From NCBI RefSeq assembly GCF_006345805.1, contig NC_043023.1, positions 15,500,001 through 15,564,000 on the forward strand: DNA of 64,000 bases. The letters run 5' to 3'. The notes beneath the pieces were generated by a model that was not told where the DNA came from, ran no database searches, and saw nothing but the letters and a program-made list of their open reading frames with translations. Below, piece after piece: positions 8,173 through 62,485 of this stretch (its first letter is position 1; the number at the start of each line of letters is the position of its first letter). The position numbers and the translations under genes are program-made. The stretch comes from Octopus sinensis. Its lineage: Eukaryota.

Positions 8173-8653
8173 TATTGTTCTATAGTATACAAGCACAAAA
8201 TATAATTTTGCTTCCTTTTTTATATATTTCTATTGCTTATATTTCCAGCAGTTCTGACCTTCATCAATATCTGAAGATGATACAAACACCTTTGCAGATA
8301 TCTCCCGCTCCAAACAGAATGTGAAATACTTTAGCAAATATTCCAGGCAATGATGGAAACAAATGTTGCCATCAATTCAGAAGAAATATTTCACAATTTT
8401 CCACCATAGACAAATCGTATAAACAGAGTTATGTCAAATATTTATAACATCTTCCATTAGATGATCAATATTCATGAAGTATCACTAACATTTCACCTCC
8501 TGAAATGACACAGAAACAAGAAAATATAGGAAAGACTTAAAAAGCAGAAATTCAACTATAAAGAAAATATAACTACATCTTCATAATGATAAACTGTGGA
8601 TATAATCCTTTAATTGGTCTTTGAAATTTATTTATGGTAATTTATAATATGGT

Positions 8654-9210: not shown

Positions 9211-9499
9211 CAACTATAGGATATTGGACAATAATATGATAAGTGACTACTGTTTAACCCTAGGTTATCCCTGACTGAGCAGATCGATTATTAATGAAAT
9301 TAGGTAATGTTACAACTTCTATAACAGATCAAACATAAACATAAACTACAATTTAGTGAACCAACCCATCATGACTTTTCCTCTCCTAACTTTATTAATA
9401 ATAAAAACAAACTGCACTCACATATGTTGAAGGTGTGGTCACTAATTTAGAGAAAGTGTTCTGTGAATTGACGTATGAAGAGTAGAGCCAGGACGGAAT

Positions 9500-9676
9500 G
9501 GCGATCCTTCGGTATAGGTACACACGTGACTTTGTTTACATTTCTGAAGATGACAGAAACCCTTTTCTCCCACCGCTAACCCTAAACCACCCCCCACCGA
9601 CATATAAAAAAAACACCTTTTTGAAATGTATCCGGTACTTCCGGAAGTACACCGGTACTTATACCGTAAGATCGCC
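9500..9676. mobile_element. MITE with GGCGATC(C/T)T(T/A)CGGTATA TIRs (copies 12580-12732, ~29862-30235, 41879-42019, ~54593-54770)
   Basis: Terminal inverted repeats and an internal perfect palindrome GTACTTCCGGAAGTAC. No TSD seen. Confidence 0.65.
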
Positions 9677-10447
9677 TTTCTTTTTAAAACAAAGTAAATA
9701 AAACACAAAAGCATAGGTACTACTAGCGAAGACTGGACCCGGTACGCGCTAGCTAGTCGTAAGTAGTCGATCCTATAACGACTTGCGCGTATGCAAATGA
9801 GTTGATTTTACCGAATAAAATAAGAGAATTTTTTAAAGAAAGTAAATAAATTATTTCTTAGAACAATGTATATGATTTTTTTACACAAATCAAATAAAAT
9901 GTGTGTGAAATATTCTTTTAGTTTTCATATTCTTTAGTAAATTATTTCTTTTTTAACTAATTAAATAAAACAAAAACACAAAGTAAGGATCTACTAGTCA
10001 CGGGATCGCTCTTCTAGAGTAGTACCATCGCCAGTTGATGACATTTGCCGATTCTGTCTACAAAAGGCTGTATCTGCTATTTATCATAGTGCTATCACTG
10101 GCCACATGTTTCAGTTAGCTATTGATGTTTTATGATGTTGCAGATTATTTATTCTGAGAAGCTGAAATAGACAGAATTATTAACGTGTATCATTTTGACA
10201 GAATAAACAGCAAATACAGATGTTTAGCAAATGATACATCTGTGATAAAACAACAAACAGCTTTGAATGGACACAACCAGCAAATGGATTATCTACCAAA
10301 ATAATTGAAATTAAAAACCAGGTGCTTTACTGGACAATAGAATTAATATCGATTTCAGACTAGTATTATTTAAAACTATCAATACTGTCTGGATTTTCCA
10401 ATTAGCCAGATACATAGGCTTTTACTAAAAAGAAAATATGTATTACA

Positions 10448-14068: not shown

Positions 14069-15205
14069 ATGAATCCTCAAGAGATGACAAAAGAAACAGA
14101 AAAATTATCACACCAATGCGATATCTGTAAAAATACTTTTTCTAGTAAGGGAAATCTCACTGTTCACAAATTTATTCATGCAGGCGAGAAACCATATCAG
14201 TGTGATATCTGTGGAAAATCATTCTCTGATAAAAGTCACCTTACTTCTCATAAATCCACTCATACAGGAAAGAAACAATATCAGTGTGATATTTGTGGTA
14301 AATCATTCTCTGATAAAAGTAACCTTGCTTCTCACAAATCCACTCATACAGGAGAGAAACCATATCACTGTGATATCGGTGGTAAATCATTCTCTCATAA
14401 AATTCACCTGACTTCTCACAAATACATTCATACAGAAGAAAGACCATATTGCTATGATATTTGTGGTAAATCATTCTCTCAGAAAATTCACCTGACTTCT
14501 CACAAATACATTCATACAGAAGAAAGACCATATTGATGTGATATTTGTGGTAAATCATTCTCTCAGAAAATTCACCTTACTTCTCACAAATCCATTCATA
14601 CAGGAGAGAAACCATATCAATGTCGTATTTGTGGTAAATCATTCTCCCATAAGCGCAGCCTTACTTATCACAAATCCATTCATACTGGAGAGAAACCATA
14701 TCAGTGTGATATTTGTGGAAAATCATTCTCTCAAAAAAGTAACCTTGATTCTCATAAATATATTCATACAGGAGAGAAGCCTCATCAATGTGATGTCTGT
14801 GGAATGTCATTCTCTCAAAGACGTTACCTTGATTCTCACAAATCTATTCATACAGGAGAGAAACCATATCAATGTCGTATTTGTGGTAAATCATTCTCCC
14901 ATAAACACAGCCTTACTTATCACAAATCCATTCATACTGGAGAGAAACCATATCAATGCGATATTTGTGGTAAATCATTCTCTCAGAAAATTCACCTTAC
15001 TTCTCACAAATCCATTCATACAGGAGAGAAACCATATCAATGTCGTATTTGTGGTAAATCATTCTCCCAGAAGCATAGCCTTACTTATCACAACTCCATT
15101 CATACTGGAGAGAAACTGTATGAGTGTGATATTTGTGGTAAATCATTGTCTTGCTTGCGCTCTTTAACCTCTCATAAAAACATTCATACAGGAGAGAAAC
15201 CATAG
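14069..15205 (+). pseudogene. C2H2 zinc-finger gene C (~13 fingers), in-frame TGA at 14534
   Basis: ORFs 14045..14536 and 14804..15205 are in the same frame. CCA TAT TGA TGT GAT ATT TGT interrupts an otherwise continuous array. Start [12 protein letters not shown] at 14069. Confidence 0.85.
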
Positions 15206-15499
15206 AACTGTAATATCTGCTGTAAATCATTCTAAGTCGGATCTTTTCCTTTTGAACGGCACATGTCAACAAAATTTCTAGTTAACTAAACACTTTAAAA
15301 CTTCGTATACTGGTAGAATGTATCAAAATAAAACATTTTTTTCTCTTGGCTTTCTTGAGAAAATTGTAATTTGTTTGTTTAATGTAGTTTAATTTTTCGA
15401 ATTTTAACCAATCCTATGCCCTCTATTGAGCTAAAATCATTTGCTGCGTCTAAAACTGAGACAACATCCTATCAGAAAATAAAGAAATAACAGTAATAA

Positions 15500-18400
15500 T
15501 CTCTTATGATAAAAGGCAGATTTTCTCTGCCTGTTCCCATGTTTCTTTTTAATACAATTCTACAATATGTAATTTCTTCAATTGGAATTTACCTGTGATT
15601 TTCCCAAGTAGATTCGATTGGGTCATGGCATGTAAAATTTTTTTAATTTGACCCCCAATTAAGCAAAAATTCGAGAAAATTAATATTTTACGAGTTGCCT
15701 CTCTCATTTCAAGTGGTTTACTTCTGCTATTACCACCACACTTTCTCCTACTTTCTCTTTGCAAGTGTGAAACTATTTAAGTGAAAGTATTATATAACAG
15801 GGATGAGCCATCAATAGTGGTCATCGTTTTTGCTAGAGGAAGATCTGCTATGGTCTTATATGCTACACCACTGGTTTTCAATTCAAATTAATCAAATTAA
15901 AATTCAATTTTTCACCCTTATTATGTGTGTGTGTGTGTATTAGCAATTCGTATAAAATTGCATCAATGACTTGAACTTGAATAAGTGGTTTCACATAAAT
16001 GGGGATAAATTAAAAAGGTTTGTTGTTATTATTACTGTTTGACTATTGCAATCACGTTTGTTGGTTCCTCGTCAGGGAAACGTTGTTGTGTTGCATTTGT
16101 TAAATAATTGTAAACCGTAACCCTCCCCCTCTCGGAGAAGGTGCTTTGGTTATTGTTTAAAAATTGAATTGTGTCCCTGTTTGGGGAAATTGACAATATT
16201 TTCACCGTCTTTACGGAAGCATTTTTGTTAAAATGCCTTCGATAGAAGAAAGTCCAAAAATGAATTTTGCTGCAGCCGTACACTTCTATCCATGAGGGAG
16301 GACAAGATCCAATTGATCGAAATTGCAAGAGACGGGCCTACAATTCCAGTCTGTTATATATTTTTGAGTATTGTTATCACTAGCGATATCAAGATATAAC
16401 TTTGTATTTTGTATTTTATGTGTAGATGTATATATATAGATGTACATGTAATATGTACACATATATACGTGCATAATATATCTACACATACGCGCGCACA
16501 CACACACACATACATAGGGGCAGGTGTGGCTGTGTGGTAACAAACTACGTTCCAAACACATGGTCCTGGGTTCAGTCCCACTGTGTGGTGACTTGGCATG
16601 TGTCTTCTGCTGTAGCTTCAGATCAACAAAAGCCTTCTCAGTGGATTTTGTACATATATACAGGCATACATACATATATATACGTGCATACGTACATATT
16701 CGGCATAAACACTCTACCACTACAACTAATAACTGTTGGGAACACTTTCAAACCTGCCTTACATTCGAACCGGAATCTCAAAAACATTGTCCCCTTCAGC
16801 GCCAAGCTCAGCTGCTCTATCTTACATGGAGGGTATCAGCAATGAAATCTATAACAAAACACTCATTGACGTTGAAGACAGAATTGCTAAACTGGGTGGA
16901 AATGTATTGTCGACGTATGCCCTGCCACAAGCATTCAGGTAAGGGTCAAATAGCCTTCCTACTGCTGTCATTCGTGAAACAACATACGACACTCAAGCGC
17001 TTTCAAAGTACATTGTTGAAAATGAGCCTAAATTACTTCCGGACCAGCTGCAGGCCTACAGATCTATTCTTAACAGTGTATGCCAATGCGAGGGACGAAT
17101 CTTCTTCCTCGATGCTCCTGGAGGGACAGGAAAAACATTTATTACAAAGCTTCTCCTTGCAGAAGTTAGGTAGCATCAGGACATTGCAGTAGCTGTAGCC
17201 TCCTCTGGCATTGCAGCTACTTTGTTACCCGGAGGCAGGACAGCACACTCAACTTTTAAACTCACTCTCAATTTAGCAGCATCCGAAATGCCTTCATGAA
17301 ACATCAACAAAAGCTCAGATCAGGGACAAGTACTTAAAATGTGTTATGTAATTGTCTGGGATGAGTGCACTATGGCTCACAAGGGAGCTTTGGAAGCATT
17401 AGATAGAGCCCTGAAAGACATCCGAGACTGTCAGGCTCCAATGGGAGGTGTAACGTTTCTGTTGTCAGGTGATTTCAAGCAAACTCTTCCTGTCATTCCG
17501 AAAGGCACTAGAGCTGATGAAGTTCAAGCATGCCTAAAGTCCTCTACCCTGTGGCATCATGTTACAATCTTTAGTCTCACCACTAACATGAGAGCTCAGC
17601 TACACGGCGACAAAATGTCCACAAAGTTTGCACAGGACATTTTGACACTTGGTGAAGGCAAGATGCCTTTCGATGGTGCAGGACAAATGGAAGTGTGGTC
17701 ATTTTCCTCTGTTGTTAATTCTGTAGATGACCTCAAAAACAAAGTCTTTCCCAACTTCACACAAAACTACCAAAATCACAATTGGCAGTGTGAAAGAGCA
17801 ATATTAGCTCCAAAAAACGTCACTGTTAACAAAATTAATCAACAGCTAATGCATTCTCTTCCCGGCACTATACACACTTACAAGTCTGTTGATACAATTC
17901 CAGATATAAATGAAGTTGTGAACTGTCCTCCTGAATTTCTCAATTCACTGGAGCCTCCTCGACTACCTCCACACATATTACCACCAAGACTTTGCAATGG
18001 AACACGACTGGTGATAAAGAAAATGATATCACAGGTTATCGAGGCGATCATTCTTTTTGGATGTGGAAAAGGTGATGACGTCTTTATTCCAAGATTTTCT
18101 CTTACTCCATCAGGAGCAGAAATTCCATTTACATTCAGAAGACTGCAATTCCCCCTTCGTGTCAGCTTTGCCATGTCCATTAACAAATCTCGGGGTCAAA
18201 CCCTCTCTGTAGCTGGTCTTCTCTTGGAAGAGCCCTGCTTCTCGCATAGGCAACTGTATGTTGGCTGCTCAAGAGTAGGAACCAAAAGAAACCTTTTCCA
18301 CAAGGAAAAACAAGGAACATTGTTTACAACGAGGTGTTATAATCTCAAAAGCCAGGCGGTATATACATGATCCCCTTTTTTTTAACAAACTTCATGTACT

Positions 18401-20682: not shown

Positions 20683-22121
20683 AGGTCACGCACATACACA
20701 CCCGCAAGTGCATGTGTTTGCCTTATTTTGCTTTGAGACGTGGTTGCAAAATATGTTCATCTGATGTTACAAGCTTTTCCTTCAATTAACCTTATATGTC
20801 AACGCATTACCTCTATACTGTCCGCTGGGTTATAACTGGATTCATCGAGTCCAAAACGGGGTCTGGCAAAATTGTACTTCCCTCATTTCTGGACTTCTTT
20901 GAATAAAGCTCCAATAATTGTTGTTGTTGCTGCCTTTGTCGTTGATTTTTCAACAGTTTTAAAGAAGCTAATTAGTCTTCCATGATTTAACAATTTTGTA
21001 TCACAAAAATTTGATAACTGACCTGCAAGAGCTTCGAAACCTTCATCGCCAGATGTTGTAACATAATTGTTCCGTACAATAAATAAGATAACCAGAAAAT
21101 TGTAACAACAATCTAATGAACTAACAAATCTTTTACGAACCAACATTCAATATTCCTTAGGAAGTAAACCAAGCGACACCTTCCGACTTTACTTGACTCT
21201 GAACCGTGAACCCACTCAGATCGTTACTATTTATACTTTACTCGAACCAATCTATCTCTCACAAGGGGACATGGTAACTCTCATCACAACAGGTGCCATT
21301 CTAACCAGATGCCCATCATAAATCCCTGCTTGGTGTCTGGTAAGAACAAGACCATGAAAACCTGCTCTACAGAATGATTTAGCAAAAAATAAGTATGATG
21401 ATAATCCCTTGCATGGGTTGAGCGGGGATGTGCTTGAACCATAGGTAGAGTGGGGCATTAGGCTTTTGAAAAATATTTCCCACTCTACACCCAAAACTGT
21501 GACAAACAGCAATAAGCCTCCAGCTAGTGCCAGAATAAGTGGGCAGTAGCACAAAGGGTGCAGATCCTGGGATCCCTGAGTGTGTCCAGCAGAGGATAAC
21601 TGATCATGGCTTGGAACTGGAGTGTAATACATTTGTGTCAAAATAATATATCATCAAGAAAACAGAGCAAATTAATATAATCAATATTGTTTGAATAAAA
21701 AACACAAATCGTAATTAGTGAGTTGATGCAAATGAGGAAAATGTGAAAAATGAATTTATTTTGTAAAAAGTAATACATTTGCTGTATTTTATTCAGCAGG
21801 ACATCTGTTTTATCATTGATATTGTTATTGATCAATATGAATAAGTATATGTTTAGTTAAGGTAGATTATTGAGAGAATGATTTAGCACAGATTACACAG
21901 TCATAAGAATCTTCTCCTGTATGAATATGTTTGTGTTTAGTTTATTATTTCTCTCTATGAAAGAATGACTTGTCACAGATGTCACAGTGATATGATTTCT
22001 CTCCTGTATGAATGTATTTGTGATGAGTTCAATATTGTTCCACAGAGAATGATTTACCTCAGGTATCACAGCAATAGAGTTTCTCTCCTGTATGAATACG
22101 TTTATAAGTATATACAGCATA

Positions 22122-22300
22122 TCTCTTATTATAAAAGGCAGCTTTTATCTGCCTCCCTTTGGGAGTTATAGAAATCTACAATATAGGATTTCTTCAATTA
22201 CAATTTACCTAGTATTTTTAAGAGTAGAATGCATCGGGTCATGCCAGGTCCAGTTTTTAAAATTTAAACTCCAATTAAGCAAAATTTACAGAAAACTCAC
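22122..22300 (+). mobile_element. Helitron 5' end related to the element at 15500
   Basis: A|TCTCTTATTATAAAAGGCAG...TCTGCC matches 15500 onward. Confidence 0.55.
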
Positions 22301-23390
22301 ATTCTGGTGTGTGTGTCAAATGCTTTTCCTAGTCTGGTTTACACCACACGCAAACGCACACACACAGTGTGCAACGAATAAGATGAAAGTAAATAGCGAC
22401 AGAGTGATTTGAGGAAGACTAAACTGAAAGTATTTAAACCACTACTCAAAAAATAAAAAAACACAGCAAACAGAAACAAATAAATACATAACGATTTACT
22501 CCTCACACAATTTCTTCAATTAGAGTGTACCCATGATTTTTCAGAGTACTTCAGTGGGTGATGCCATAAAAAATTTCTTTCAATTTTACCACCAATTAAG
22601 ACAAAATTCGAGAAAACTCAATATTTTAACATATCACTCCGAAAGCATTGATGTACATGTGTGCGTGCGTGAGTGTGTGTGTGTCATTCCTCACACACAC
22701 GCATACACATACATATACAACTACATACAAACACGTGTGTGTTTGTTATTAAAAAAGGCGCCAAAACACAACTCACTTATCATTCCAACACATTTGCAAA
22801 GACACACGGACGGACAGAAAAGGTAAATTGGTTTTTATTTTACTCTGTATATATTTTATTATATAATATTATATATAGATATATGTATATATAATTGCAG
22901 TATGAAACAGTGTTTATGTATAAACAGACGACACTTATGATTTTGATTTTGATTTTGATTTTTCCAGTTTCAGCTTATGAGCTGTGGCCATGCTGGGGCA
23001 CCGCCATTGTATATAGTTATTATAGTTATATATAGTTATTATAATAAGAGATTAATAAATGTATGCATCCGTTTAACCCTTTCGTTACCAAGCCGCCCGA
23101 ATTTACCTATTCATATTTAAATGAGAATATCAGAGCAAATCTCTTTAGTACATTTGTGAAAACACGTATTATACTTCGTAAACACTTCAACTACAGTTTT
23201 GTACAAAAATCGAAGTGTAATTTTAATTCCGTGAATTATGGGAGATTTGTTCCTATTGTGTTTTCAAAATTTGTAATTCTGACAAAAAATGGATACGAAT
23301 TTCATTATATCAAGCAGCGAGTCAGAATTCGAAGGATTTTCTACTGAAGACCTTCATAAATCTAACTCTATGACTGAAAAGAAAAAAGCA

Positions 23391-23785
23391 TCTTTATATA
23401 AGAGTGAAGTTGTGTGTCTGTCCCCTTCGATTTAGATTCGTAACTACTCCCACATTTTGCCGTGCAGTTTAACCAAAAGCGGGTATCTTATAGTCGTGAT
23501 TCATATCGAGCCCTTCTGGGTATTAGTGTGCGTCTACGATGAGTCTACGATTTAAAAAAAATTTACCATCATATTTTTCCAATTTAATGAATTTTTTTCG
23601 CTTTTATATATGGGAAGTAACTCTCTAAAAATATCTACGATGTGTCAACGATTTAAAAAAAAATTTACCTTAATTTTTTTTCAATTTTTAATGCATTTTT
23701 TTGCTATTTTTTGGCTATAACTCTCTAAAAATGCTTATATAGTTATTTCCCTTACAACCCGAGCAACGCCGGGCGATACTGCTAC
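23391..23785 (+). mobile_element. Short non-autonomous Helitron
   Basis: A|TCTTTATATAAGAGTG at the start; 3' hairpin CCCGAGCAACGCCGGG followed by CTAC|T (degenerate CTAG). Part of a ~1.67-kb insert (22122-~23793) in the tail of D that is absent from the F and G tails. Confidence 0.7.
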
Positions 23786-23905
23786 TTCACAATAGAATGA
23801 TTTGCTGCAGACATCACAGTCACATAGTTTCTCTCCAGTATGAGCAGACTTGTAATTAATTAAATAATTTCTTAAACGGAATAATTTACTGCAGATACTA
23901 CAGTG

Positions 23906-25537
23906 CTATGGTTTGTCCCCTGTATTAATGCATTTGTGTCCATTTAAGTACCTTTTTTCAGAGAATGATTTACCACAGATATCACACTGATATGGCCTCT
24001 CATGAGCATGAGTGAGTTTGTGAGTAGTTAAATAACTTTTTAATGAAAAAGATTTATCACAGATATCACACTGATATGGTTTCTCACCTGTATGAACTGA
24101 TTTGTGATAAGTAAGGTGACCTTTTTGAGAGAATGATTCACCACAAATATCACATTTATATGGTTTCTCTCCTGTATGAGTGTATTTGTGATAAGTAAGG
24201 CCTCTCCTTCGAATGAACGATTTACCACAAATATCGCAGTGATATGGCTTCTCACCTGTATGTGTAAGTTTGTGAGTAGTTAAATGACTTTTTAATGAAA
24301 AGGATTTATCACAGATATCACACTGATATGGTTTCTCACCTGTATGAACTGATTTGTGAGTAGTAAGGTTACATTTTTGAGAGAATGATTTACTACAAAT
24401 ATCGCAGTGATGTGGCTTCTCATGTGTATGTGTAAGTTTGTGAGTAGTTAAATGACTTTTTAATGAAAAAGATTTATCACAGATATCACACTGATATGGT
24501 TTCTCACCTGTATGAACTGATTTGTGAGTAGTAAGGTTACATTTTTGAGAGAATGATTTACTACAAATATCGCAGTGATATGGCTTCTCACGTGTATGTG
24601 TAAGTTTGTGAGTAGTTAAATGACTTTTTAATGAAAAAGATTTATCACAGATATCACACTGATATTGTTTCTCACCTGTATGAACTGATTTGTGATAAGT
24701 AAGGTGACCTTTTTGAGAGAATGATTTACCACAAATATCACATTTATATGGTTTCTCTCCTGTATGAGTGTATTTGTGATAAGTAAGGCCTCCCCTTTGA
24801 GTGAATGATTTACCACAAATATCACAGGGATATGGCCTCTTATGAGCATGAGTGAGTTCGTGAGTAGTTAAATGACTTTTTGATGAAAAAGATTTATCAC
24901 AGTGATATGGTTTCTCTCCTGTATGAATGGATTTATGAGAATTTAAAGTGCTCAAGTAAGAGAATGATTTATCACAGATATCACAGTGATATCGTTTCTC
25001 TCCTGTATGAATGTATTTGTGTCTAGTAAGGTGACTTTTTGATGAAAATGATTTACCACAAATATCACACTGATATGGTTTCTCTCCAGTATGAACGGAA
25101 TTGTGAGAAGTAAGGCGACTTCTTTGAGAGAATGATTTACCACAAATACCACACCGATATGGTTTCTCACCTGTATGAATGTATTTGTGAGAATAAAGGC
25201 TACTTTTTTGAGAGAATGATTTACCACAAATATCGCAGTGATGTGGTTTCTCTCCTGTATGAATGTGTTTGTGAGAATCAAAGCTACTCGCATGACAGAA
25301 TGATTTACCGCAAATATCACAGTGATGTGGTTTCTCTCCAGTATGAATGTATTTGTGATGAGCAAGGTGACTTTTTCGAGAAAATGATTTACCACAAATA
25401 TCACAGTAATATTTCTTTCCACCTGGATCAATACATTTGTGAACAGTGAGATTTCCCTTATTAGAAAAAGTCTTTTTACAGATATCACATTGGTCTGATA
25501 ACTTTTCTCTTTCTTTTAACATCTCCAGACTATTCAT
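23906..25537 (-). CDS. C2H2 zinc-finger protein D, 543 aa, ~19 fingers, no effector domain
   Basis: Uninterrupted [15 protein letters not shown]...NTGDKP*. One finger (YHCDKSF) lacks a Cys. Confidence 0.92.
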
Positions 25538-26240
25538 TATTGTTCTATAGTATACAGACAGAAAATATATTTTCCCCTTCTTCTTTATATATATCTTCTA
25601 CAGCAAATCTGATCTTGAATATCTGAAAATGATACAAACACCTTTCCAGATTTTCTCACATTCAAACTGAATGTGAAATACTTTTGTAAATATTCCTGGC
25701 AATGAGGAAAACAAATGTTGCTATTAATTCAGAAGAAATATTTCACCGTTATTCACCAGAGATATATTATATAAACAGAGTTATTATCTATTATTTATAA
25801 CGGCTGACAATCGTTTTCAAAACATGATCAATATTCATGATGTATCTCACGTAAAACTCCTTTATACGAGTATCTGAAATGACACAGAAACAGTAGAAGA
25901 TATAGGAAAGACTTAAAAAGCAAAGATTTAACAATAAAAATTATAACTACATTTTCATAATGATAAACTGTGGATATAAACTTTTACCCGAAGAAATTAC
26001 ACTTTAAAATGATACTCATGACACAAGACATTACTTTCGTCTATAATGACCTGAGTCATAAATCTAATACTTTCTCTAGTTTAGTTTCAATGCACCCAAA
26101 CAAACAAAAGGAAAAGCAGTGTAAATAACGGACAGTCAAAACTATTGAAAAGGTTGCAAGACGCAACGAAAATTTTAGGAAAAAAGGAAATAAGTAAGAA
26201 ATAACTGCAAAATTTTACCGATGTGTTAAGTTATAAGGCA

Positions 26241-31466: not shown

Positions 31467-32099
31467 ATGAATCCGCCGGAGATGACAAAAGAAAGAGAAA
31501 AATTATCAGACCAATGTGATATCTGTAAAAAGACTTTTTCTAATACAGCAAATCTCACTGTTCACAAGTGTATTGATCCAAGTGGAAAGCAATATCGCTG
31601 TGATATCTGTGGTAGATCATTCTCTCATAACAGTAACCTTACTAAACACAAATACATTCACACAGGAGAGGAACCATATCACTGTGATATCTGTGATAAA
31701 TCCTTTTCATTAAAAAGTCATTTAATTACTCACAAACTAACACATACAGGTGAGAAGCCACATCACTGCGATATTTGTGGTAAAACATTCCCTCATAAGA
31801 ATAGCCTTACTTATCACAAATCAATTCATACAGGAGAGAAACCATATCAGTATGATATTTGTGGTAAATCATTCTCTCAAAAAGGTAACTTTGATTCTCA
31901 CAAATCAATTCATACAGGAGAGAAACCATATCACTGCAATATCTGTGGTAAATCCTTTGTATTAAGAAGTTATTTAACTGCTCATGAACGTACTCACACT
32001 GATGAGAGGCCATATCAGTGTGATATTTGTGGTAAATCATTCTCTGGAAAAAGTAACCTTACTAGACACAAATACATTCATACAGGAGAGAAATCATAG
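31467..32099 (+). CDS. C2H2 zinc-finger protein E, 210 aa, 7 fingers
   Basis: Uninterrupted [15 protein letters not shown]...HTGEKS*. One finger has Cys>Tyr (YQYDIC). Confidence 0.9.
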
Positions 32100-36927: not shown

Positions 36928-39494
36928 AAATTTTGTATGTCTATATTTCTCCCCCCAACATCGCTTGACTATTGAAGCTGGTGCGTTTACGTCCCTGTAA
37001 CTTAGCAGTTCGGCAAAAGTGACTGATAGAATAAGTCCTGGGGTCTATTTTCTTGACTAAAGGCGGTGCTCCAACATGCCCACTGTCAAATGACTGAAGC
37101 ATGTAGAAGAGATAGGTTTCCCTAATTTCTTCCATATACAGTCAACTCTCGCTACTTTGCCACCCTGCGGGACTGAGCCAGAGTGGCATAGTACCGAGGG
37201 TCTGTTATCTAAACACTACATAACCAAAAATTTACTGAACATACGAATAAAAATTCATAGGGTAGGAAGTAAGGCCAATAAGAATTTCAATGCAATGGTA
37301 AAAAGAAGACATCCATGTTTATTAAGTTCAAATTGCTTTTAGTTAATCCTGAAGCTCTCAAAAATTGTCGGCTGACGCATCTACTTTCGGGCGATTTCAT
37401 TCATTTCATTGTCTAGCCTATCATACGCCTGTATGACCCTGGGTTCTCCGCTGCTCTTCTGCTGCATAAACTTTCGGATAGTGCTCCATGCTCTCTGGGC
37501 ATCTGCAAAACTGGCATAGTAGGGAGAGTTGACTGTATCCATATTTATTATTGAAATATCACTTCCAATGTCTAACTGAAGTTTAATATGTATTCCAATC
37601 ATTTTTACATGTACGAATTTTGTTTCTGTTCAGAGCCCTCTAGGATCTTTAATGGTTGATCTTCAGAATTTAGTTCTGCAGTGTGAATTTCTGTATATTC
37701 AGTGTTGTAAGGCCTTTTACCACAAAAGACACCTGAACATCTCAGGTGTAAATTCTTTGAGTTTAAAAATATTCACACATTCTGTTAATTGTTCCTGCGT
37801 ATGTGATAAAATCACCATCCTCTTTTTTCATTATATTCCAAAACACCATCCAAGTGTTAGAGAAGTTTTATCACCGAATATGTTAGACAGTAATTCCATT
37901 GTTTCTTTAAACAAATTTCATTGAGTTTTTTTGGGGTAATATGAAATTAAAGTAATGTTCATGCTCAGATGGGGCTCATTTATGTCATAATAACCTTACT
38001 TTTTCTGTGTCTGACCATGTCTTACAATCTTCCTTAAAAATTACCTGCTGTAGTACAATGCAACAGTTATACCGTCCTCTGGGTTACAACTGGATTCATT
38101 GAGTCCAAAACGGGGTCTGGCAAAAATGTACTTCCCTCATTTTTGGACTTCTTTGAATAAAGCCCCAATAATTGTTGTTGTTGCTGCCTTTGTCGTTGAT
38201 TTTGCAACAGTTTTAAAGAAGCTAATTAGTCTTCCATGATTTAACAATTTTGTATCACAAAAATTTGTTAACTGACCTGCAAGAGCTTCGAAACCCTCAT
38301 CGCCAGATGTTGTAACATAATTGTTCCGTACAATAAATAAGATAACCAGAAAATTGTAACAACAATCTAATGAACAAACAAATCTTTTAAGAACCAACAT
38401 TTATTATTCCTTAGGAAGTAAACCAAGCGACACCTTCCGACTTCACTTGACTCTGAACCGCAAACCCACTCAGATCGTTACTATTTATACTTTACTCGGA
38501 CCAGTCTATCTCTCACAAGGGGACATGGTAACTCTCATCACAACAGGTGCCATTCTAACCAGATGCCCATGATAAATCCCTGCTTGGTGTCTGGTAAGAA
38601 CAAGACCATGAAAACCTGCTCTACAGAATGATTTAGCAAAAAATAAGTATGATGATAATCCCTTGCATGGGTTGAGCGGGGATGTGTTTGAACCATAGGT
38701 AGAGTGGGGCATTAGGCTCTTGAAAAATATTTCCCACTCTACACCCAAAACTGTGACAAACAGCAATAAGCCTCCAGCTAGTGCCAGAATATGTGGGTAG
38801 TAGCACAAAGGGTGCAGATCCTGGGATCCCTGAGTGTGTCCAGCAGAGGATAACTGATCATGGCTGGGAACTGGAGTGTAATACATTTGTGTCAAAATAA
38901 TATATCCTCAAGAAAACAGACCAAATTAATATAATCAATATTGTTTGAATAAAAAACACAAATCGTAATTAGTGAGTTGATGCAAATGAGGAAAATGTGA
39001 AAAATGAATTTATTTTGTAAAAAGTAATACATTTGCTGTATTTTATTCAGCAGGACATCTGTTTTATCATTGATATTGTTATTGATCAATATGAATAAGT
39101 ATATGTTTAGTTAAGGTAGATTATTGAGAGAATGATTTAGCACAGATTACACAGTCATAAGAATCTTCTCCTGTATGAATATGTTTGTGTTTAGTTTATT
39201 ATTTCTCTCTATGAAAGAATGACTTGTCACAGATGTCACAGTGATAGGATTTCTCTCCTGTATGAATGTATTTGTGATGAGTTCAATATTGTTCCACAGA
39301 GAATGATTTACCTCAGATATCACAGCAATAGAGTTTCTCTCCTGTATGAATACATTATAAGTATATACAGCATATTCCTGAGAGAATGATTTGCTGCAGA
39401 CATCACAGTCACATAGTTTCTATCCAGTATGAGCAGACTTGTAATTAATTAAATATTTTCTTAAACGGAATAATTTACTGCAGATACCACAGTG

Positions 39495-40790
39495 CTATGG
39501 TTTGTCCCCTGTATTAATGCATTTGTGTCTATTTAAGTACCTCTTCTGAGAGAATGATTTACCACAGATATAGCACCGATATTGTTTCTCACCTGTATGA
39601 ACTGATTTGTGAGAATCAAGGTAACTTTTTTGAGAGAATGACATTCCGCAGACATCACATTGATGAGGTTTCTCTCCTGTATGAATATATTTATGAGAAT
39701 CAAGGTTACTTTTTTGAGAGAATGATTTTCCACAAATATCACACTGATATGGTTTCTCACCTGTATGAATGTATTTATGAGAATCAAGGCTACTTTTTTG
39801 AGAGAATGACATTCCACAGACATCACATTGATGAGGTTTCTCTCCTGTATGAATGTATTTGTGAGTGGTAAGGCTACTTTTCTGAGAGAATGATTTACCA
39901 CAAATATCACACTGATTTGGTTTCTCTCCAGTATGAACAGATTTGTGATAAGTAAGACTACTCTTATGAGAGAATGATTTTCCACAAATATCACATCGAT
40001 ATGGTTTCTCTCCTGTATGAATGGATTTGTGAGAAGAAAGGTGACTTTTTCGAGAGAATGATTTTCCACAGATATCACAGTGATAAGGTTTCTCCCCTGT
40101 ATGAATGTATTTGTGAGAAGTCAGGTGAATTTTTCGAGAGAATGATTTTCCACAGATATCACAGTGATAAGGTTTCTCTCCTGCATGAGTGGATATGTGT
40201 CTAGTAAGGTTGCTTTTATCAGAGAATGATTTACCACAAATATCACAGTGATAAGGTTTCTCTCCTGTATGAATGGATTTGTGAGAAGAAAGGTGACTTT
40301 TTCGAGAGAATGATTTTCCACAGATATCACAGTGATAAGGTTTCTCTCCTGTATGACTGGATATGTGTCTAGTAAGGTTATTTTTATCAGAGAATGATTT
40401 ACCACAAATATCACAGTGATAAGGTTTCTCTCCTGTATGAATGTATTTGTGTTTAGTAAGGCCTATCTTCTGAGAGAATGATTTACCACAAATATCACAT
40501 TGATAAGGTTTCTCTCCTGTATGAATGTATTTGTGAGAAGTAAGGTGACTTTTTTGGGAGAATGACTTTCCACAGACATCACAGTGATATGGTTTCTCCC
40601 CTGTATGAATGGATATGTGAGAAGTAAGGCTGTGCTTCTGGGAGAATGATTTACCACAGTGATATGGCTTCCTACCAGCATGAATGAATTTGTGAACAGT
40701 GAGATTTCGCTTATTAGAAAATGTCTTTTTACACATATCACATTGGTGTGATAATTTTTCTCTTTCTTTTGTCATCTCTTGAGGATTCAT
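39495..40790 (-). CDS. C2H2 zinc-finger protein F, ~431 aa, 15 fingers (chimeric)
   Basis: ORF 39495..40814; the paralog-consistent start [12 protein letters not shown] is at 40790. Finger 2 (YHCGKSF) lacks a Cys. Confidence 0.9.
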
Positions 40791-42586
40791 TATTGTTCTA
40801 TAGCATACAAACACAAAATATAATTTTGCCTCCTTTTTTATATATTTCTATTGCTTATATTTCCAGCAGTACTGATCTTCATCAATATCTGAAGATGATA
40901 CAAACACCTTTGCAGATATCTCCCGCTCCAAACAGAATGTGAAATACTTTAGCAAATATTCCAGGCAATGATGGAAACAAATGTTGCCATCAATTCAGAA
41001 ATATTTCACAATTTTCCACCATAGACAAATCATATAAACAGAGTTATGTCAAATATTTATAACATCTTCCATTAGATGATCAATATTCATGAAGTATCAC
41101 TAACATTTCACCTCCTGAAATGACACAGAAACAGAAGAAGATATAGGAAAAACTTAAAAAGCAGAGATTCAACTATTAAAAAAAATATAACTACATCTTC
41201 ATAATGATAAACTGTGGATAAAATCCTTCAATTTGTCTTTGTAATTTATTTATGGCAATTTATAATATGGTAACCCTTTTGTTACCATATTTCTTTTGAG
41301 ATTCAGTGTGTTTCTTTCAATTATTTTAAATATAATAAAGAATTTAGTAAACTTAGTTATCATTCAACTAGTGTTAGCAACATAAATTGTAACTAAGGTT
41401 TCGTGGAAGATTTTAATTCAAAACTTATGAAAACAAGACATTTTACCACAGAGCCAGAGCCGGTTTGGGCCGGGTTAGTAAGAAAAGGGTGTGGTCTTTG
41501 AAATTTATTTTGTTATTAAAATTATATGATACAACCTTGTGTAATGTCTACATATACACGGACTTCCGTTCCTCTTCCTTCAGATATTATGTAAAACATT
41601 ATCCCTTTAGTGTTCAGATTATTCTGTTAAATGTAATTCTTTTTCACTCTATTTCAGATCTATTATTAATGAAATTAGGTAATGTTCATGATTGTTACAA
41701 CTTCTGTAACAGATCAAACATAAACTACAATTTAGTGAACCAACCCATCATGACTTTTCCTCTCGTAACTTTATTAATAATAAAAACAAACTACACTCAC
41801 ATATGTTGAAGGTGTGGTCACTAATTTCGAGAAAGTGTTCTGTGAATTGACGTATGAAGAGTAGAGCCAGGACAGAATGGCGATCCTTCGGTATAGGTAC
41901 ACACGTGACTTTGTTTACATTTCTAAAGATAACCCTAACCCCCACATATAAAAAAACACCTTTTTGAAATATATCCGGTACTTCCGGAAGTACATCGGTA
42001 CTTATACCGTAAGATCGCCTTTCTTTTTAAAACAAAGTAAATAAAACACAAAAGCATAGGTACTACTAGCGAAGACTGGACCCGGTACGCGCTAGCTAGT
42101 CGTAAGTAGTCGATCCTACAACGAAAATTTTAGGAAAAAAGTAAATAAGTAAGAAACAACTGCAAAATTTTACCGATGCGTGTGTTAAATTATAAGGCAC
42201 AAAAAGAAAATGACTCTCCCCAGACACAACAGAATATGCTTCAATACACGAATTCATATAAAGAACCTTGCAAACCAAATCCAAAAACGAAATAGAATTA
42301 TCTGTTTCTTTATTACCCACAAGGGGCGAAACACGGACGGGACAAACAAGGACAGACAAACGGATTAAGTCGATCACATTGACCCCAGTGCGTAACTGGT
42401 ACTTAATTTATCGATCCCGGAGGATGAAAGGCAAAGTCGACCTTGGCGGAATTTGAACCCAGAACGTAACGGCGGACGAAATTAATATCGATGTCAGACT
42501 AGCAACATTGAATACTTTCATTATTGTCTGGAGTTTCGAATTTTCCAGGTTCTTCTGCTTTCACTAAAAATAAAATATGTACGATA

Positions 42587-42721
42587 TCTTACCTGTTATG
42601 ATAAATAAATCAGTGCTAAATGTCAATTAACGCAAACCACACCAAAAAAGCCATTCAGCGGGAAACGTAATTGAAAGAAAGCTCAAAAAATAGACATGGA
42701 ATATTGACGAAACGAACTGAA
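42587..42721 (-). promoter_or_regulatory. Putative exon-1 module of gene F
   Basis: Reverse strand: TCAGTTCGTTTCG at 42721 and AG|GTAAGA at 42592. Near-identical inverted copy of the G module. Confidence 0.55.
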
Positions 42722-42974
42722 TGGTTTTCGAATACAGGTAGAAATAACACACACGAGTCTTCCTATTTTCCCTCCATCCCTCTTTGATAAGTCCTGTTGG
42801 TTTCTTTCCGTCCCTGTAATTTAAGGGTTCGGTAACAGGATAGTGGAAAAGTACCAATAGATATGAAAATAAGCAGTCAGTTTTGTATGTTTTGTCATCA
42901 TTTGGATTTTTCCTCATAACTCACATTTTTGAAAAGTAATTATACCAATAAAAACCATTGAGAATTTACCAACT

Positions 42975-43160
42975 TAGTTTTAGCATCCGATAAATTTATA
43001 GTATTACGATATGTACGACATCCGGATATCAGTTCGTTTCGTCTATATTCCATGTCTATTTTTTGAGCTTTCTTTCAATTACGTTTCCCGCTGAATGGCT
43101 TTTTTGGTGTGGTTTGCGTTAATTGACTTTTAGCACTGAGTTATTTATAACAGGTAAGAT
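42975..43160 (+). promoter_or_regulatory. Putative exon-1 module of gene G
   Basis: TAGCATCCGATAAA, TCAGTTCGTTTCG at 43029, AG|GTAAGA at 43154. Confidence 0.55.
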
Positions 43161-44232
43161 ATCGTACATATTTTATTTTTAGTGAAAGCAGAAGAACCTG
43201 GAAAATTCGAAAGTCCAGACAATAATGAAAGTATTCAATGTTCCTAGTCTGACATCGATATTAATTTCGTCCGCCGTTACGTTCTGGGTTCAAATTCCGC
43301 CGAGGTCGACTTTGCCTTTCATCCTTTCGGGGTCGATAAATTAAGTACCAGTTACGCACTGGGTCAATGTGATCGACTTAATCCGTTTGTCTGTTCTTGT
43401 TTGTTTCGTCCGTGTTTCGCCCCTTGTGGGTAATAAAGAAATAGATATTAATTCTATTTGGTTTGCAAGGTTCTTTATATGAATTCGTGTATTGAAGCAT
43501 ATTCTGTTGTGTCTGGGAAGAGTCATTTTCTTTTTGTGCCTTATAATTTAACTCACTCATCGGTAAAATTTTGCAGTTATTTCTTACTTATTTCCTTTTT
43601 TCCTAAAATTTTCGTTGCGTCTTGCAACCTTTTCAATAGTTTTGACTCTGTCCGTTATTTACACTGCTTTTCCTTTTGTTTGTTTGGGTGCATTGAAACT
43701 AAACTAGAGAAAGTATTAGATTTATGACTCAGGTCATAATAGACGAAAGTAATGTCTTGTGTCATGAGTATCATTTTAAAGTGTAATTTATTCGGGCAAC
43801 AGTTTATCATTATGAAAATGTAGTTATAATTTTTATTGTTAAACCTTTGCTTTTTCAGTCTTTCCTATATCTTCTACTGTTTCTGTGTCATTTCAGATAC
43901 TCGTATAAAGGAGTTTTACGTGAGATACATCATGAATATTGATCATGTTTTGAAAACGAATGTCAGCCGTTATAAATAATAGATAATAACTCTGTTTATA
44001 TAATATATCTATGGTGAATAACGGTGAAATATTTCTTCTGAATTAATAGCAACATTTGTTTTCCTCATTGCCAGGAATATTTACAAAAGTATTTTGCATT
44101 GTGTTTGAATGTGAGAAAATCTGGAAAGGTGTTTGTATCATTTTCAGATATTTAAGATCAGATTTGCTGTAGAAGATATATATAAAGAAGAAGGGGGAAA
44201 TATATTTTCTGTCTGTATACTACAGAACAATA

Positions 44233-45779
44233 ATGAATGGGCTGGAAATGTTAAAAGAAAGAGAAAAGTTATCAGACCAATGTGATATCTGTAAAAAGAC
44301 TTTTTCTAATAAGGGAAATCTCACTGTTCACAAATGTATTGATCCAGGTGGAAAGAAATATTACTGTGATATCTGTGGTAAATCATTCTCTCATAGAAGT
44401 TCCCTTGATTCTCACAAACACATTCATACAGGTGAGAAACCGTATCAGTGTGATATCTGTGATAAATCCTTTTCATTAAAAAGTTATTTAACTACTCACA
44501 AATCCATTCATACAGGAGAGAAACCATATCGATGTGATATTTGTGGTAAATCATTCACTCAGAAATGTAGCCTCGCTCATCACAAATACACTCATACTGG
44601 AGAGAAACCATATCAATGTGATATTTGTGGTAAATCATTCTCTCAAAGGAGAGGCCTTTATTCTCACAAATACACTCATACAGGAGAGAAACCATATAAA
44701 TGTGATATTTGTGGTAAATCATTCTCTCAAAAAGGTCACCTTACTTATCACAAATCAGTTCATACAGGTGAGAAACCATATCAGTGTGATATCTGTGATA
44801 AATCTTTTTCATCAAAAACTCATTTTACTACTCACAAACTTACACATACACGTGAGAAGCCACATCACTGCGATATTTGTGGTAAATTATTCTCTCAAAA
44901 ATGTAACCTTACTACTCACAAATAAGTTCATACAGATGAGAAACCATATCAGTGTGATATCTGTGATAAATCTTTATCATCAAAAAGTCATTTAACTACT
45001 CACGAACTCATTCATGCTCATGAGAGGCCATATCCCTGTGATATTTGTGGTAAATCATTCACTCAAAGGAGAGCCCTTACTTATCACAAATACACTCATA
45101 CAGGAGAGAAACCATATAAATGTGATATTTGTGGTAAATCATTCTCTCAAAAAGGTCACCTTACTTATCACAAATCAGTTCATACGGGTGAGAAACCATA
45201 TCAGTGTGATATCTGTGATAAATCCTTTTCATTAAAAAGTTATTTAACTACTCACAAACTCATTCATACTAATGTGAGGCCATATCCCTGTGATATTTGC
45301 GGTAAATCATTCACTCAGAAATGCAGCCTCACTTCTCATATACCTATTCATACTGGAGAGAAATCATATCACTGCAATATATGTGGAAAATCATTCTCTC
45401 ATAGGAGTGGCCTTACTTATAACAAATCAGTTCATAAAGGAGAGAAACCATATCACTGTGATATCTGTGGTGTAGCATTCTCTGAAAAAAGTAGCCTTGC
45501 TTATCACAAATACACACATACAGGAGACAATCCATATCCCTGTGATATATCTGTGTAAATCATTTTCTTCTAGAAGCAGTTTAACCTCTCATAGATACAT
45601 TCACACAGCAGAGAGACCATATTCTTGCGATATCTGTGATAAGTCATTCTGTTTAAAAAAATATTTAACTGATCACAAACACGTTCATACACACGAGAAT
45701 CCATATCTGTGGTAAATCATTCTCTCAAAAAAGGTACTTTAGTGGACACAAATGCATTAATACAGGGGACACACCATAG
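44233..45779 (+). pseudogene. C2H2 zinc-finger gene G (~18 fingers), nonsense plus frameshifts
   Basis: ORF 44233..44925 ends at TCA>TAA. The same frame continues to 45558, followed by frameshifts near 45548 and 45705. The D-like terminal finger [10 protein letters not shown] ends at 45779. Confidence 0.85.
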
Positions 45780-52723: not shown

Positions 52724-53356
52724 CTATGATTTCTCTCCTGTATGAATGTATTTGTGTCTAGTAAGGTTACTTTTATGAGAGAATGATTTATCACAGATAT
52801 CACACTGATATGGCCTTTCATTAGTGTGAGTAAGTTCATGAGCAGTTAAATTACTTCTCACTACAAAGGATTTACCACAGATATTGCAGTGATATGGTTT
52901 CTCTCCTGTATGAATTGATTTGTGATAAGTAAGTCTATTCTTATGAGAGAATGATTTACCACAAATATTGCAGTGATATGGCTTCTCACCTGTATGTGTA
53001 AGTTTGTGAGTAATTAAATTACGTTTTAATGAAAAGGATTTATCACAGATATCACACTGATATGGTTTCTCTCCTGTATGAATGTATTTGTGACAAGTAA
53101 GGATACTCCTATTAGAGAATGATTTACCACAAATACCACATTGATATGGTTTCTCTCCTGTATGAATGTATTTGTGATGAGTAAGATTATCTTTCTTAGA
53201 GAATGATTTACCACAGATATCACAGTGAAATTGCTTTCCACTTGGATCGATACACTTGTGAACAGTGAGATTTGCTGTATTAGAAAAAGTCTTTTTACAG
53301 ATATCACATTGGTCTGATAATTTTTCTCTTTCTCTTGTCATCTCCGGTGGATTCAT
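52724..53356 (-). CDS. C2H2 zinc-finger protein H, 210 aa, 7 fingers
   Basis: ORF 52724..53488; start MNPPEMTREREK at 53356. The frame is intact, but its putative exon 1 is disrupted (see findings). Confidence 0.85.
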   Translation of the reverse strand: MNPPEMTREREKLSDQCDICKKTFSNTANLTVHKCIDPSGKQFHCDICGKSFSKKDNLTHHKYIHTGEKPYQCGICGKSFSNRSILTCHKYIHTGEKPYQCDICDKSFSLKRNLITHKLTHTGEKPYHCNICGKSFSHKNRLTYHKSIHTGEKPYHCNICGKSFVVRSNLTAHELTHTNERPYQCDICDKSFSHKSNLTRHKYIHTGEKS

Positions 53357-54780: not shown

Positions 54781-57040
54781 TCTTCTACTTCTTGTGGAAG
54801 GGCGGGAAACCACTTGTGAAACGCTCTACTTGCTGTCAACAACCGTTAAAGGGTGGCTAGGGATGCCTTGGCTGATGATGCGCAGACATGCGCTGAGGTT
54901 AAGACATCTGTGGCTCTACCTGGATGGTGAACGGGTGTGGTCTTCGCTAGCAAAACTGATATTTCCCAAGTTCACTAGTTTCGGTGGATGGGAAACCTGG
55001 CTGAATCGTAGATTGAAAGTTGGTACTTGGTACACGGAGTGTCGCAAGGCTCTCCTGCTATTCCGTCGCTCGGGCAACGCCTGCGGTGGGGGTTCCACCA
55101 CATTCTTCTATAGAGGGTTGGTAGAGGCGGAATGTGAAGATACCTTGGGGGAAACCCTAGGTCTCGACGATAATCAGCTGGCCAGTCTGTTCCGACGTAC
55201 GTTCGAGCCGAGGACACTGGACAACTTCCAGAAGTCTCTGGCATGGCAATGCTACAGAGGAGCTCTACCTGTTCGGGATAAACTCGCAAGGCACGGTGGC
55301 CAAGACAGTCCGATATGTCCAAGATGCGGGCGGGATAGGGAAACCGTCCCGCACGCTATTGTTCATTGTCCGGACGTGTCTGAGGTGTGGGTTTATGCCG
55401 AACACCTGTTGTCAGGTACACAAAGAGTACAGCTGTCGACTGAGTCGATTACAAAAATTGACCCACCGGATTTCCTCGTGAATGAAGGTAAGTTTCGTTT
55501 TCTCGTTGTAGTAGCAATTGCGAAAGAGGTGATATGGAAGACGAGAATGAAAGGTGTACAGTCAGGCAAGTTCATCTCCGGCCCTGGTTTGATGAAGTAT
55601 TTCATCTTTCACCTGAAAAGGAAGATAGGGCTGGAGAGAATATGCCTGACTAGGAGAGTGTATGAAGAACGATGGAAGGATGTAGCACGAAAGTTGCGAG
55701 TGAAAGATACAACATAAATGTAATACCAAGCGCAACCAAAAGTATCAGTGGGGAGGCGGGGCTCGTGGGGTCCGAGCTAAACCCGCACCCACTCCACCCG
55801 TAATGTCTTCCGGTCTGTCCCATCATTCGATTTCTGTCCATTTATTGTAATTCATGAAAATTTTAAAATTCGATTTATTGTAAAAACCCATTCGTGTGTC
55901 TGACCCCATCATCAGATTGTATTGTCCCGTCTATGTTCGCCCCTTGTGGGTAATAATAAAACAACATGCGCTGAGGTTAAGACATCTGTGGCTCTACCTG
56001 GATGGTGAACGGGTGTGGTCTTCGCTAGCAAAACTGATGTTTCCCAAGTTCACTAGTTTCGGTGGATGGGAAACCTGGCTGAATCGTAGATCGAAAGTTG
56101 GTACTTGGTACACGGAGTGTCGCAAGGCTCTCCTGCTATTCCGTCGCTCGGGCAACGCCTGCGGTGGGGGTTCCACCACATTCTTCTATAGAGGGTTGGT
56201 AGAGGCGGAATGTGAAGATACCTTGGGGGAAACCCTAGGTCTCGACGATAATCAGCTGGCCAGTCTGTTCCGACGTACGTTCGAGCCGAGGACACTGGAC
56301 AACTTCCAGAAGTCTCTGGCATGGCAATGCTACAGAGGAGCTCTACCTGTTCGGGATAAACTCGCAAGGCACGGTGGCCAAGACAGTCCGATATGTCCAA
56401 GATGCGGGCGGGATAGGGAAACCGTCCCGCACGCTATTGTTCATTGTCTGGACGTGTCTGAGGTGTGGGTTTATGCCGAACAGCTGTTGTCAGGTACACG
56501 AAGAGTACAGCTGTCGACTGAGTCGATTACAAAAATTGACCCACCGGATTTCCTCGTGAATGAAGGTAAGTTTCGTTTTCTCGTTGTAGTAGCGATTGCG
56601 AAAGAGGTGATATGGAAGACGAGAATGAAAGGTGTACAGTCAGGCAAGTTCATCTCCGGCCCTGTTTTGATGAAGTATTTCATCTTTCACCTGAAAAGGA
56701 AGATAGGGCTGGAGAGAATATGCCTGACTAGGAGAGTGTATGAAGAACGATGGAAGGATGTAGCACGAAAGTTGCGAGTGAAAGATACAACATAAATGTA
56801 ATACCAAGCGCAACCAAAAGTATCAGTGGGGAGACGGGGCTCGTGGGGTCCAAGCTAAACCCGCACCCACTCCACCCGTAATGTCTTCCGGTCTGTCCCA
56901 TCATTCGATTTCTGCCCATTTATTGTAATTCATGAAAATTTTTAAATTCGATTTATTGTAAAAACCCATTCGTGTGTCTGACCCCATCATCAGATTGTAT
57001 TGTCCCATCTATGTTCGCCCCTTGTGGGTAATAATAAAAC
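54781..57040 (+). mobile_element. L1/Tx1-clade LINE 3' fragment, tandemly duplicated (period 1078 bp)
   Basis: F.FLWKG...GGLGMP motif and zf-RVT-like CPRCGRDRETVPHAIVHC..VW. The units ~54885-55962 and ~55963-57040 differ at about a dozen positions by eye. Confidence 0.85.
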
Positions 57041-57120
57041 AAAACGAACTAATCTCTAAATATTGTATCCATCCTATAACTACGCATTTGTCGGATGCTA
57101 AAACTGAAGTGGTAAATTTT
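57041..57120 (-). promoter_or_regulatory. Truncated exon-1 module of gene H
   Basis: Inverted copy of the E module, cut just after TTAGTTCGTTT by the LINE 3' end at 57040. Confidence 0.5.
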
Positions 57121-60230: not shown

Positions 60231-60454
60231 GAAATATTGTCCAATAATATGTAATTTAATGTTTTACATAATATCCGAAGGAAGAGGAGCTGAAGTCTGT
60301 GTATATGTAGACATTACACAAGGTTGTATCATATAATTTCAATAACAGAATATATTTCAAAGACAACTTAAAGGATTATATCCACAGTTTATGATTATGA
60401 AAATGAAATTATATTTTCTATTGTTGAATCTCTGCTTTTTAAGTCTTTCCTATA

Positions 60455-60845: not shown

Positions 60846-62485
<1,640 letters not shown>

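Follow-up and report, generated by a model that had tools for sequence, protein, structure and literature searches.

Gene F, a poly-zinc-finger gene of Octopus sinensis, is a mosaic in which the body of one type of gene lies within the locus of another. It is found in a 64-kb window (64,000 nucleotides of NCBI RefSeq assembly GCF_006345805.1, contig NC_043023.1, forward-strand positions 15,500,001 to 15,564,000; numbered here from its first letter). Our analysis covers this single assembled window, and the paralogs compared are the copies inside it. The window contains nine poly-C2H2 zinc-finger genes (A to I) in alternating orientations. All nine can be aligned over the 490 bp 5' of the ATG, and over this block and the exon start they fall into four types about 15–18% apart: a-type (A, E and H; pairwise identity 97.3–97.9%), b-type (B, C and the tract in F; 96.3–96.7%), d-type (D and G, 97.3% identical over the same block and exon start) and i-type (I alone). 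Both self-BLAST and a 100-bp best-hit profile divide the F locus into three zones, d-type, b-type and d-type again. The mosaic is best explained, in our judgement with good probability, by non-reciprocal templated replacement of the d-type body of F by b-type sequence during the repair of a break or gap. The parts of the locus are as follows.

37534–39603, minus strand: d-type 3' part of the F locus, with the terminal degenerate finger, the stop codon, dead fingers (about 39076–39497) and the 3' flank
39495–40790, minus strand: open reading frame (ORF) of gene F, 431 aa plus stop; b-type tract in a d-type locus
39604–39612, minus strand: 3' junction, a 9-bp identity TCACAAATC (sense strand), lying in the H-K linker that follows the final finger of b-type
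39613–42118, minus strand: b-type (B/C-type) tract, from self-BLAST, best-hit profile, identities, tree and approximately unbiased (AU) test, and upstream alignment
42119–42124, no strand: 5' junction, the CAACGA microhomology common to b- and d-type
42125–42720, no strand: d-type inner arm of a palindrome on the F side, mirroring 43029–43617 on the G side

Within the tract, F is close to B and C. Over 40700–41649 it matches B 8082–9035 and C 14159–13207 at about 95–96% by BLAST (96.4% to B and 96.3% to C over aligned columns), with 78–79% for D and G. Over 41655–42124 the BLAST identities to B and C are 88–92%, and those over aligned columns 96.5% and 94.7%, respectively. D and G can be aligned with the tract only over an ancient shared 520 bp, at about 84% identity. 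Outside the tract, the relatives of F are D and G. Its 3' part is 96–97.7% identical to them: F 37534–39500 matches G 47715–45774 at 96% and F 38068–39375 matches D 20814–22122 at 97.6%, D 23794–23911 also belonging to the 3'-flank homology. On the other side, F 42119–42720 matches G 43617–43029 at 96.3%, and the first 75–80 bp or so from 42119 also match D 26164–26240. Phylogenies of the separate segments conflict in the way that gene conversion produces. The maximum-likelihood (ML) tree of the 5' part of the tract groups F with B and C (support 100/100) and that of the 3' flank groups F with D and G (100/99), with B outside, so that the segments of F do not all group with one paralog. In the AU test the tract data reject an (F,D,G) clade (p = 5.5e-6) and the flank data reject (F,B) (p = 0.008).

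A preliminary description, made from the letters alone, had given F a B-type N-terminus and CDVCGMSF fingers, b-type sequence up to about 42118, and a D/G-type last finger, 3' flank and sequence past 42118. Alignments and unit comparison agree with all of this (tract 39613–42118, about 96.4% to B/C; D/G-type parts 96–98% to D/G). Its tract of about 2.6 kb beginning at 39495 stands as a tract and is shortened to about 2.51 kb (39604/39612 to 42118/42124), since the former range included the d-type finger and the end lies at 39604–39612. By the length in D, the tract takes the place of about 2.07 kb of d-type sequence; F lacks this homologous interval, which makes the change a replacement rather than an insertion. 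At both junction positions D and G run on uninterrupted as d-type and B and C as b-type, and the breaks in the homology of F coincide; F is therefore the recipient in a single event. The event was non-reciprocal within the window, where B and C are b-type throughout and mutually collinear across the junction homologues. F alone switches type at the junctions, and a gene-conversion or template-switch tract, as had been proposed, is the most economical reading.

The order of events can be read from a large palindrome of about 25 kb (30024–54780), whose arms hold E and F on one side and G and H on the other and flank a unique 308-bp spacer (42721–43028, no strand). From this arrangement F and G are mirror copies, and D is a third d-type copy. 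The arms are 86–97.7% identical overall and 96.3–97.7% identical between F and G. Because G is pure d-type, the tract arrived after F and G had split.

A mosaic in a highly repetitive zinc-finger cluster with palindromes could be an artefact in which b-type reads were wrongly joined into a d-type F locus, and this mosaic is known from a single assembly, with no second copy among our look-ups and scans. We regard such a chimera as unlikely. Two mis-joins separated by 2.5 kb would be required, one at a mere 6 shared bp with no repeat, where overlap-based assemblers do not mis-join, and the other in frame within an uninterrupted 431-aa ORF. The window has zero Ns, i.e. no gaps. An assembly error is expected as a mis-join in a long, near-identical repeat that leaves a segment identical to another locus; against the window copies, the tract is instead 3.5% away from every b-type copy and has private indels. 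The private marks of F comprise 31 substitutions, a 245-bp indel, a 9-bp deletion and internal finger duplications. Together with the 3.5% divergence, they identify the F tract as an old, independently evolving locus and not as copies of B or C reads.

The 5' junction is resolved to the base and lies exactly where the preliminary description had put a CAACGA microhomology, at 42119–42124, with no detectable homology flanking it. F reads ...GTCGATCCTA, then CAACGA, then AAATTTTAGG. After the hexamer, B and C continue with CTTGCGCG, and before it D and G read ...GCAAGACG. Base by base, F equals B and C through ...GTAAGTAGTCGATCCTA, passes CAACGA and becomes D/G-like with AAATTTTAGGAAAAAAG...; the sequence following the hexamer in B/C is CTTGCGCGTATGC and that preceding it in D/G is ...GGTTGCAAGACG. 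B carries TAACGA, which makes the shared stretch 6 bp long for C but 5 bp for B. In G the d-type CAACGA site remains un-recombined (43612–43617, minus strand; the equivalent in D is 26164–26169). Over 320 bp on either side of CAACGA, local alignments of b-type with d-type score no better than shuffles (z −0.6 to 1.7). The chance of a junction microhomology of at least 6 bp is about 0.001–0.002, and the breaks of F–B/C and of F–D/G homology coincide at the same 6 bp. On this sequence evidence the junction is an illegitimate join via microhomology, not a crossover in decayed homology. We had considered whether it lies at anciently homologous positions, as a ATTTTACCGA motif is near it in both types; this was rejected, the alignments being no better than shuffles. 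A transposon boundary was likewise rejected within the window, where neither side is copied beyond B/C or D/G.

The polarity of the transfer itself rests on parsimony, and F could in principle have kept an ancestral b-type core while D and G were overwritten. That would require two transfers ending at exactly the same 6 bp, and it has to face flanks of F that either fail to align with the B/C flanks or reach no more than 80% identity with them, vs 96% for the cores. A related proposal, capture of a b-type gene by a Helitron-like transposon, could point to a PIF1/Helitron-like fragment in the window (17339–18370), but insertion would neither remove 2 kb of target nor land in frame at a homologous finger linker, and the junctions show no element termini. 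We consider either course extremely improbable.

The 3' junction is of a different kind. Alignment, a 42-mer scan and a unit table confine it conservatively to 39545–39612, the most probable switch point being the 9-bp identity TCACAAATC at 39604–39612. Units 13 and 14 of F (39749–39582) are b-type. Unit 13 shares 83 of its 84 bases with C and 81 with B; unit 14 bears the b-specific CDVCGMSF motif and is the counterpart of the last finger of B, where the stop codon comes directly after. Downstream from 39603, F is best matched by d-type finger linkers, followed in order by the d-type degenerate terminal finger, stop codon, dead fingers and flank. The join is in frame but one 84-bp unit, i.e. 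one finger, out of register. Beside it, at 39535–39604, F-private substitutions are locally in excess: about 8 positions in 70 nt separate F from the best d-type composite, which gives an odd QYRCYIC motif. Error-prone repair synthesis or a lost d-type finger variant is a possible source of this excess. Further into the d-type 3' flank, a 129-aa ORF is conserved between F (38506–38895) and D (21252–21641); it has no Pfam match and is probably a repeat remnant.

Taken together, the two junctions suggest the following course of templated replacement. F would have begun as a d-type gene, the mirror of G in the palindrome and a sister copy of D, and once F and G had split, some 2.07 kb of its body would have been replaced by about 2.51 kb in one non-reciprocal event. 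A break or gap in F may have left a 3'-side end that paired with a b-type gene through finger repeats of roughly 80–85% similarity, shifted by one 84-bp unit and with a perfect match of 9 bp at the switch point. Synthesis would then have copied the b-type gene toward its 5' side, through the coding sequence, the conserved upstream block and a further 840 bp, past the end of b/d homology. Finally, the new strand would have left its template and joined the other broken end through CAACGA, i.e. synthesis-dependent strand annealing (SDSA) ended by microhomology-mediated end joining (MMEJ). The donor would be B or C, the ancestor of both, or a copy beyond the window, about 26–33 kb away. The product is the intact 431-aa poly-zinc-finger ORF, presumably expressed and effectively a third b-type gene with a d-type terminal finger, stop, 3' flank and distal upstream region.

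A replicative variant would leave identical scars. In microhomology-mediated break-induced replication (MMBIR) or fork stalling and template switching (FoSTeS), a collapsed fork in F would have been primed on b-type sequence via CAACGA, copied 2.5 kb and switched back in the finger repeats, possibly in the same burst that made the palindrome. The 5' junction, with 6 bp of microhomology and no flanking homology, has the form seen in MMBIR/FoSTeS or MMEJ-type events, in which 2–15 bp are shared between otherwise non-homologous sequences. A b-type template lies within tens of kilobases, the window has inverted duplications and three copies each of the a-, b- and d-types at 2–4% divergence, and breakpoint clustering, with a duplicon boundary of D, F and G about 80 bp from the junction, lends some support. 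On the other side, the pure d-type state of G means that the palindrome had already formed when the tract arrived, the in-frame repeat homology at the 3' junction fits strand invasion equally well, and the scars are the same as those of break repair. We hold fork switching to be a possible but doubtful account. As the junctions differ, one homeologous and one a microhomology, and as the cluster shows many rearrangements, two or more independent events might also be imagined, e.g. an unequal crossover in the finger arrays followed by deletion or end-joining that restored d-type sequence upstream. One crossover between F and B or C should have deleted or inverted tens of kilobases, but the intervening C, D and E and the synteny of the F flank with G and D are intact, and more steps are needed than for one templated replacement; such a history is very unlikely.

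Several points weigh against reading the mosaic as repair copied from a b-type donor, or at least against its details. Gene conversion, template switching and break repair would leave the same sequence scars and cannot be separated by them. The donor is not demonstrably B or C: private sites number 31 in F, 18 in B and 28 in C, a near-star trichotomy, and B and C share a derived codon (KETEKLS; KEREKLS in all others) and a 245-bp block that F lacks. The interior fingers of F, each closest to b-type fingers, reach only 88–95% identity, and the array is not collinear with that of B or C, with positional matches at its first unit and its last two b-type units alone; this is consistent with later shuffling of the array or with an unsampled donor, either of which has to be assumed. 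Exact look-up of F (two start codons), of D and of the 129-aa ORF in a protein collection returned no record, and a metagenome scan with a b-type 30-mer beside the junction gave zero matches.

Naming B or C as the donor was rejected, as site patterns do not resolve it (polarised counts: two sites for B+C vs one for F+B). The donor may have been the B/C ancestor, B or C before later homogenisation between them, or an unsampled copy. The tract differs by about 3.5% from both B and C and the F and G arms differ by 2.3–3.7%; this similarity places the transfer in the duplication burst that brought the a-, b- and d-types to three copies each. These triplets at 2–4% divergence themselves point to a burst of segmental duplication.

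Nearly all of a b-type gene is in the tract, which runs from 1.33 kb 5' of the ATG to the last b-type finger: 840 bp of b-specific upstream sequence, the 490-bp block found in all paralogs, the N-terminus and all fingers save the terminal d-type one. The 490-bp block ends in a conserved ...ACTATAG followed by AACAATA-ATG, which resembles a splice acceptor in having AG just before the ATG. Two features mark the upstream part.

41649–41655, no strand: site with TATTTC in F replacing a block of about 245 bp common to B (9036–9279) and C (12963–13206)
41874–42024, no strand: foldback element inside the tract, 151 bp, with 27-nt inverted arms

The palindromic core of the foldback, GTACTTCCGGAAGTAC, is at 41978–41993. 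In B, C, E, F and H the same core lies 1.19–1.47 kb ahead of the ATG, with foldback copies at about B 9637, C 12608, E 30196 and H 54621, and it is absent upstream of D, G and I. An 8-mer of the core has 11 matches vs 0.59 expected. The element could be an ETS-like promoter element or an old miniature inverted-repeat transposable element (MITE). The region of about 41.8–43.5 kb is CpG-rich, with an observed/expected ratio of up to 1.8 vs 0.57 window-wide. The duplicon boundary of D, F and G (F about 42199 = D 26240 = G 43537) is about 80 bp from the CAACGA junction, and the rearrangement breakpoints cluster in the CpG-rich stretch. Also in the upstream part, a 111-bp b-type block (41491–41601) is 92.8% identical to sequence just upstream of I (60257–60367), which exceeds the roughly 85% of the surrounding b/i homology; it contains an ACTTCCG motif.

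F was described beforehand as an intact gene with a new finger combination whose palindrome partner had decayed. Its ORF of 431 aa is indeed uninterrupted and has 13 canonical C2H2 fingers by regular-expression count, with the C-x2-C-x12-H-x3-H pattern and TGEKP-type linkers of poly-zinc-finger proteins; the novelty is modest, namely a b-type array plus one degenerate d-type finger. Its Pfam matches are zf-C2H2 (E = 1.3e-83, 14 stretches) and zf-H2C2_2 (E = 3.4e-122), all of them zinc-finger families, with no KRAB, SCAN or BTB effector domain in the F ORF. The N-terminus reads MNPQEMTKE...HKFIH, and the first finger starts 14 residues after the Met. Finger 2 (40590–40664) lacks its Cys pair (D-x-C) because 9 bp were deleted in frame, and the terminal finger, like that of D, is degenerate. 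Internal duplicate units (40002–40085 and 40254–40337, 99%; 40170–40253 and 40338–40421, 95%) indicate recent unequal exchange within the array. A protein search restricted to the N-terminus of F gave no match, and a full-length search returned generic C2H2 proteins at no more than 60% identity and was set aside as uninformative. Among the relatives, D is intact with 543 aa. G has indeed decayed, by a stop after codon 230 (44923–44925), one inserted base near 45554 and the loss of 11 bp after about 45702. B runs for 403 aa to a stop, with more fingers continuing out of frame, and C is truncated at 155 aa. Of the b-type copies in the window, F alone is thus open as far as the stop usual in the family. 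At about 1.5–2% change on its own branch, this intactness is weak evidence of selection.

Interlocus gene conversion between tandem or inverted paralogs is well known from vertebrate KRAB zinc-finger clusters, globin genes and genes of the major histocompatibility complex. The F case is similar in being non-reciprocal and kilobase-scale, with unchanged copies of the donor type, conflicting tract and flank phylogenies and one boundary in repeat homology. It differs at the 5' boundary, which has no homology beyond 6 bp and is therefore not a classical two-end resolution, and in swapping 2.07 kb for 2.51 kb of largely non-alignable sequence, almost a whole gene with 1.3 kb upstream. FoSTeS/MMBIR and SDSA–MMEJ are known from human copy-number variant junctions and gap-repair experiments. 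Here too the junction has 6 bp of microhomology, the sequence is templated from tens of kilobases away and other breakpoints are close to F. In contrast to those cases, the second junction of F was guided by homeologous repeats and is in frame, and the outcome is an intact gene, fixed or old at about 3.5% divergence, and not a recent, pathogenic copy-number variant. Primate Y ampliconic palindromes keep their arms more than 99.9% identical through arm-to-arm conversion. The F/G pair resembles them as a head-to-head gene pair in a large inverted repeat with a short spacer. However, its arms are 96–98% identical (96.3–97.7% for F and G), well short of Y-type homogenisation, and the tract, whose source lies outside the palindrome, has been neither copied into G nor erased by it. 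From this divergence and the failure of the tract to spread, arm-to-arm homogenisation appears weak or absent.

Expansion of C2H2 zinc-finger genes in cephalopods was reportedly described by Albertin and colleagues in 2015. Like those expansions, the present locus is a dense cluster of effector-less poly-C2H2 genes with recent duplicates; studies of them treat expansion and expression divergence, whereas F is a case of gene-body overwrite. Duplicates in cephalopod C2H2 expansions are often found in different expression modules, in an account that makes no mention of conversion, recombination or palindromes (PMC12513265). One further reading, which we think improbable, is that the tract is a whole transcription unit, from beyond the CpG-rich GTACTTCCGGAAGTAC block (about 1.2–1.5 kb upstream of the ATG in a- and b-types) to about 8 codons before the b-type stop, so that the overwrite would have given a promoter and an intact array to one arm of a d/d palindrome while G decayed. 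If this is true, recurrent gene-body swaps could place cephalopod zinc-finger duplicates in different regulatory contexts and expression modules; gene-body overwrite as a route to the reassortment of expression modules is speculation.

Apart from this, F is a base-resolved example of new combinations of gene and context in a fast-evolving cephalopod zinc-finger cluster. Turnover of the repertoire in the cluster includes, besides duplication and decay, templated replacement between diverged paralogs, and the overwritten F keeps an ORF at a locus whose mirror has decayed to a pseudogene. Chimeric paralogs made by ectopic conversion or template switching are familiar from other gene families, and the value of the case is illustrative and not conceptual.

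The other zinc-finger genes of the window, together with the regions of B and C homologous to the tract, are listed below.

1562–2266, minus strand: gene A, poly-C2H2 zinc-finger gene, a-type
6222–8172, minus strand: gene B, b-type, oriented as F
6400–9781, minus strand: gene B and the upstream region homologous to the tract; b-type sequence continues past 9781
12476–15300, plus strand: gene C with the tract-homologous region upstream of it; b-type, in the opposite orientation to F
14069–15205, plus strand: gene C, b-type
23906–25537, minus strand: gene D, d-type
31467–32099, plus strand: gene E, a-type
44233 to about 45781, plus strand: gene G, pure d-type pseudogene, mirror partner of F
52724–53356, minus strand: gene H, a-type
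60846–62373, plus strand: gene I, i-type

The GC content of the window is about 35%, and an Rfam scan of it gave no match. Remains of transposons are scattered through it. The PIF1/Helitron-like ORF at 17339–18370 (343 aa) is a helicase fragment, the closest named relatives of which are from Octopus bimaculoides (69–82% identity). D has an insertion of about 1.67 kb (22123–23793) in its dead-finger 3' tail relative to F and G. Beyond H, 54886–55964 and 55964–57042 form a perfect head-to-tail tandem duplication of 1079 bp with 98.9% identity; each copy contains an ORF of about 300 aa with a zf-RVT domain and resembles the tail of a non-long-terminal-repeat (non-LTR) retrotransposon.

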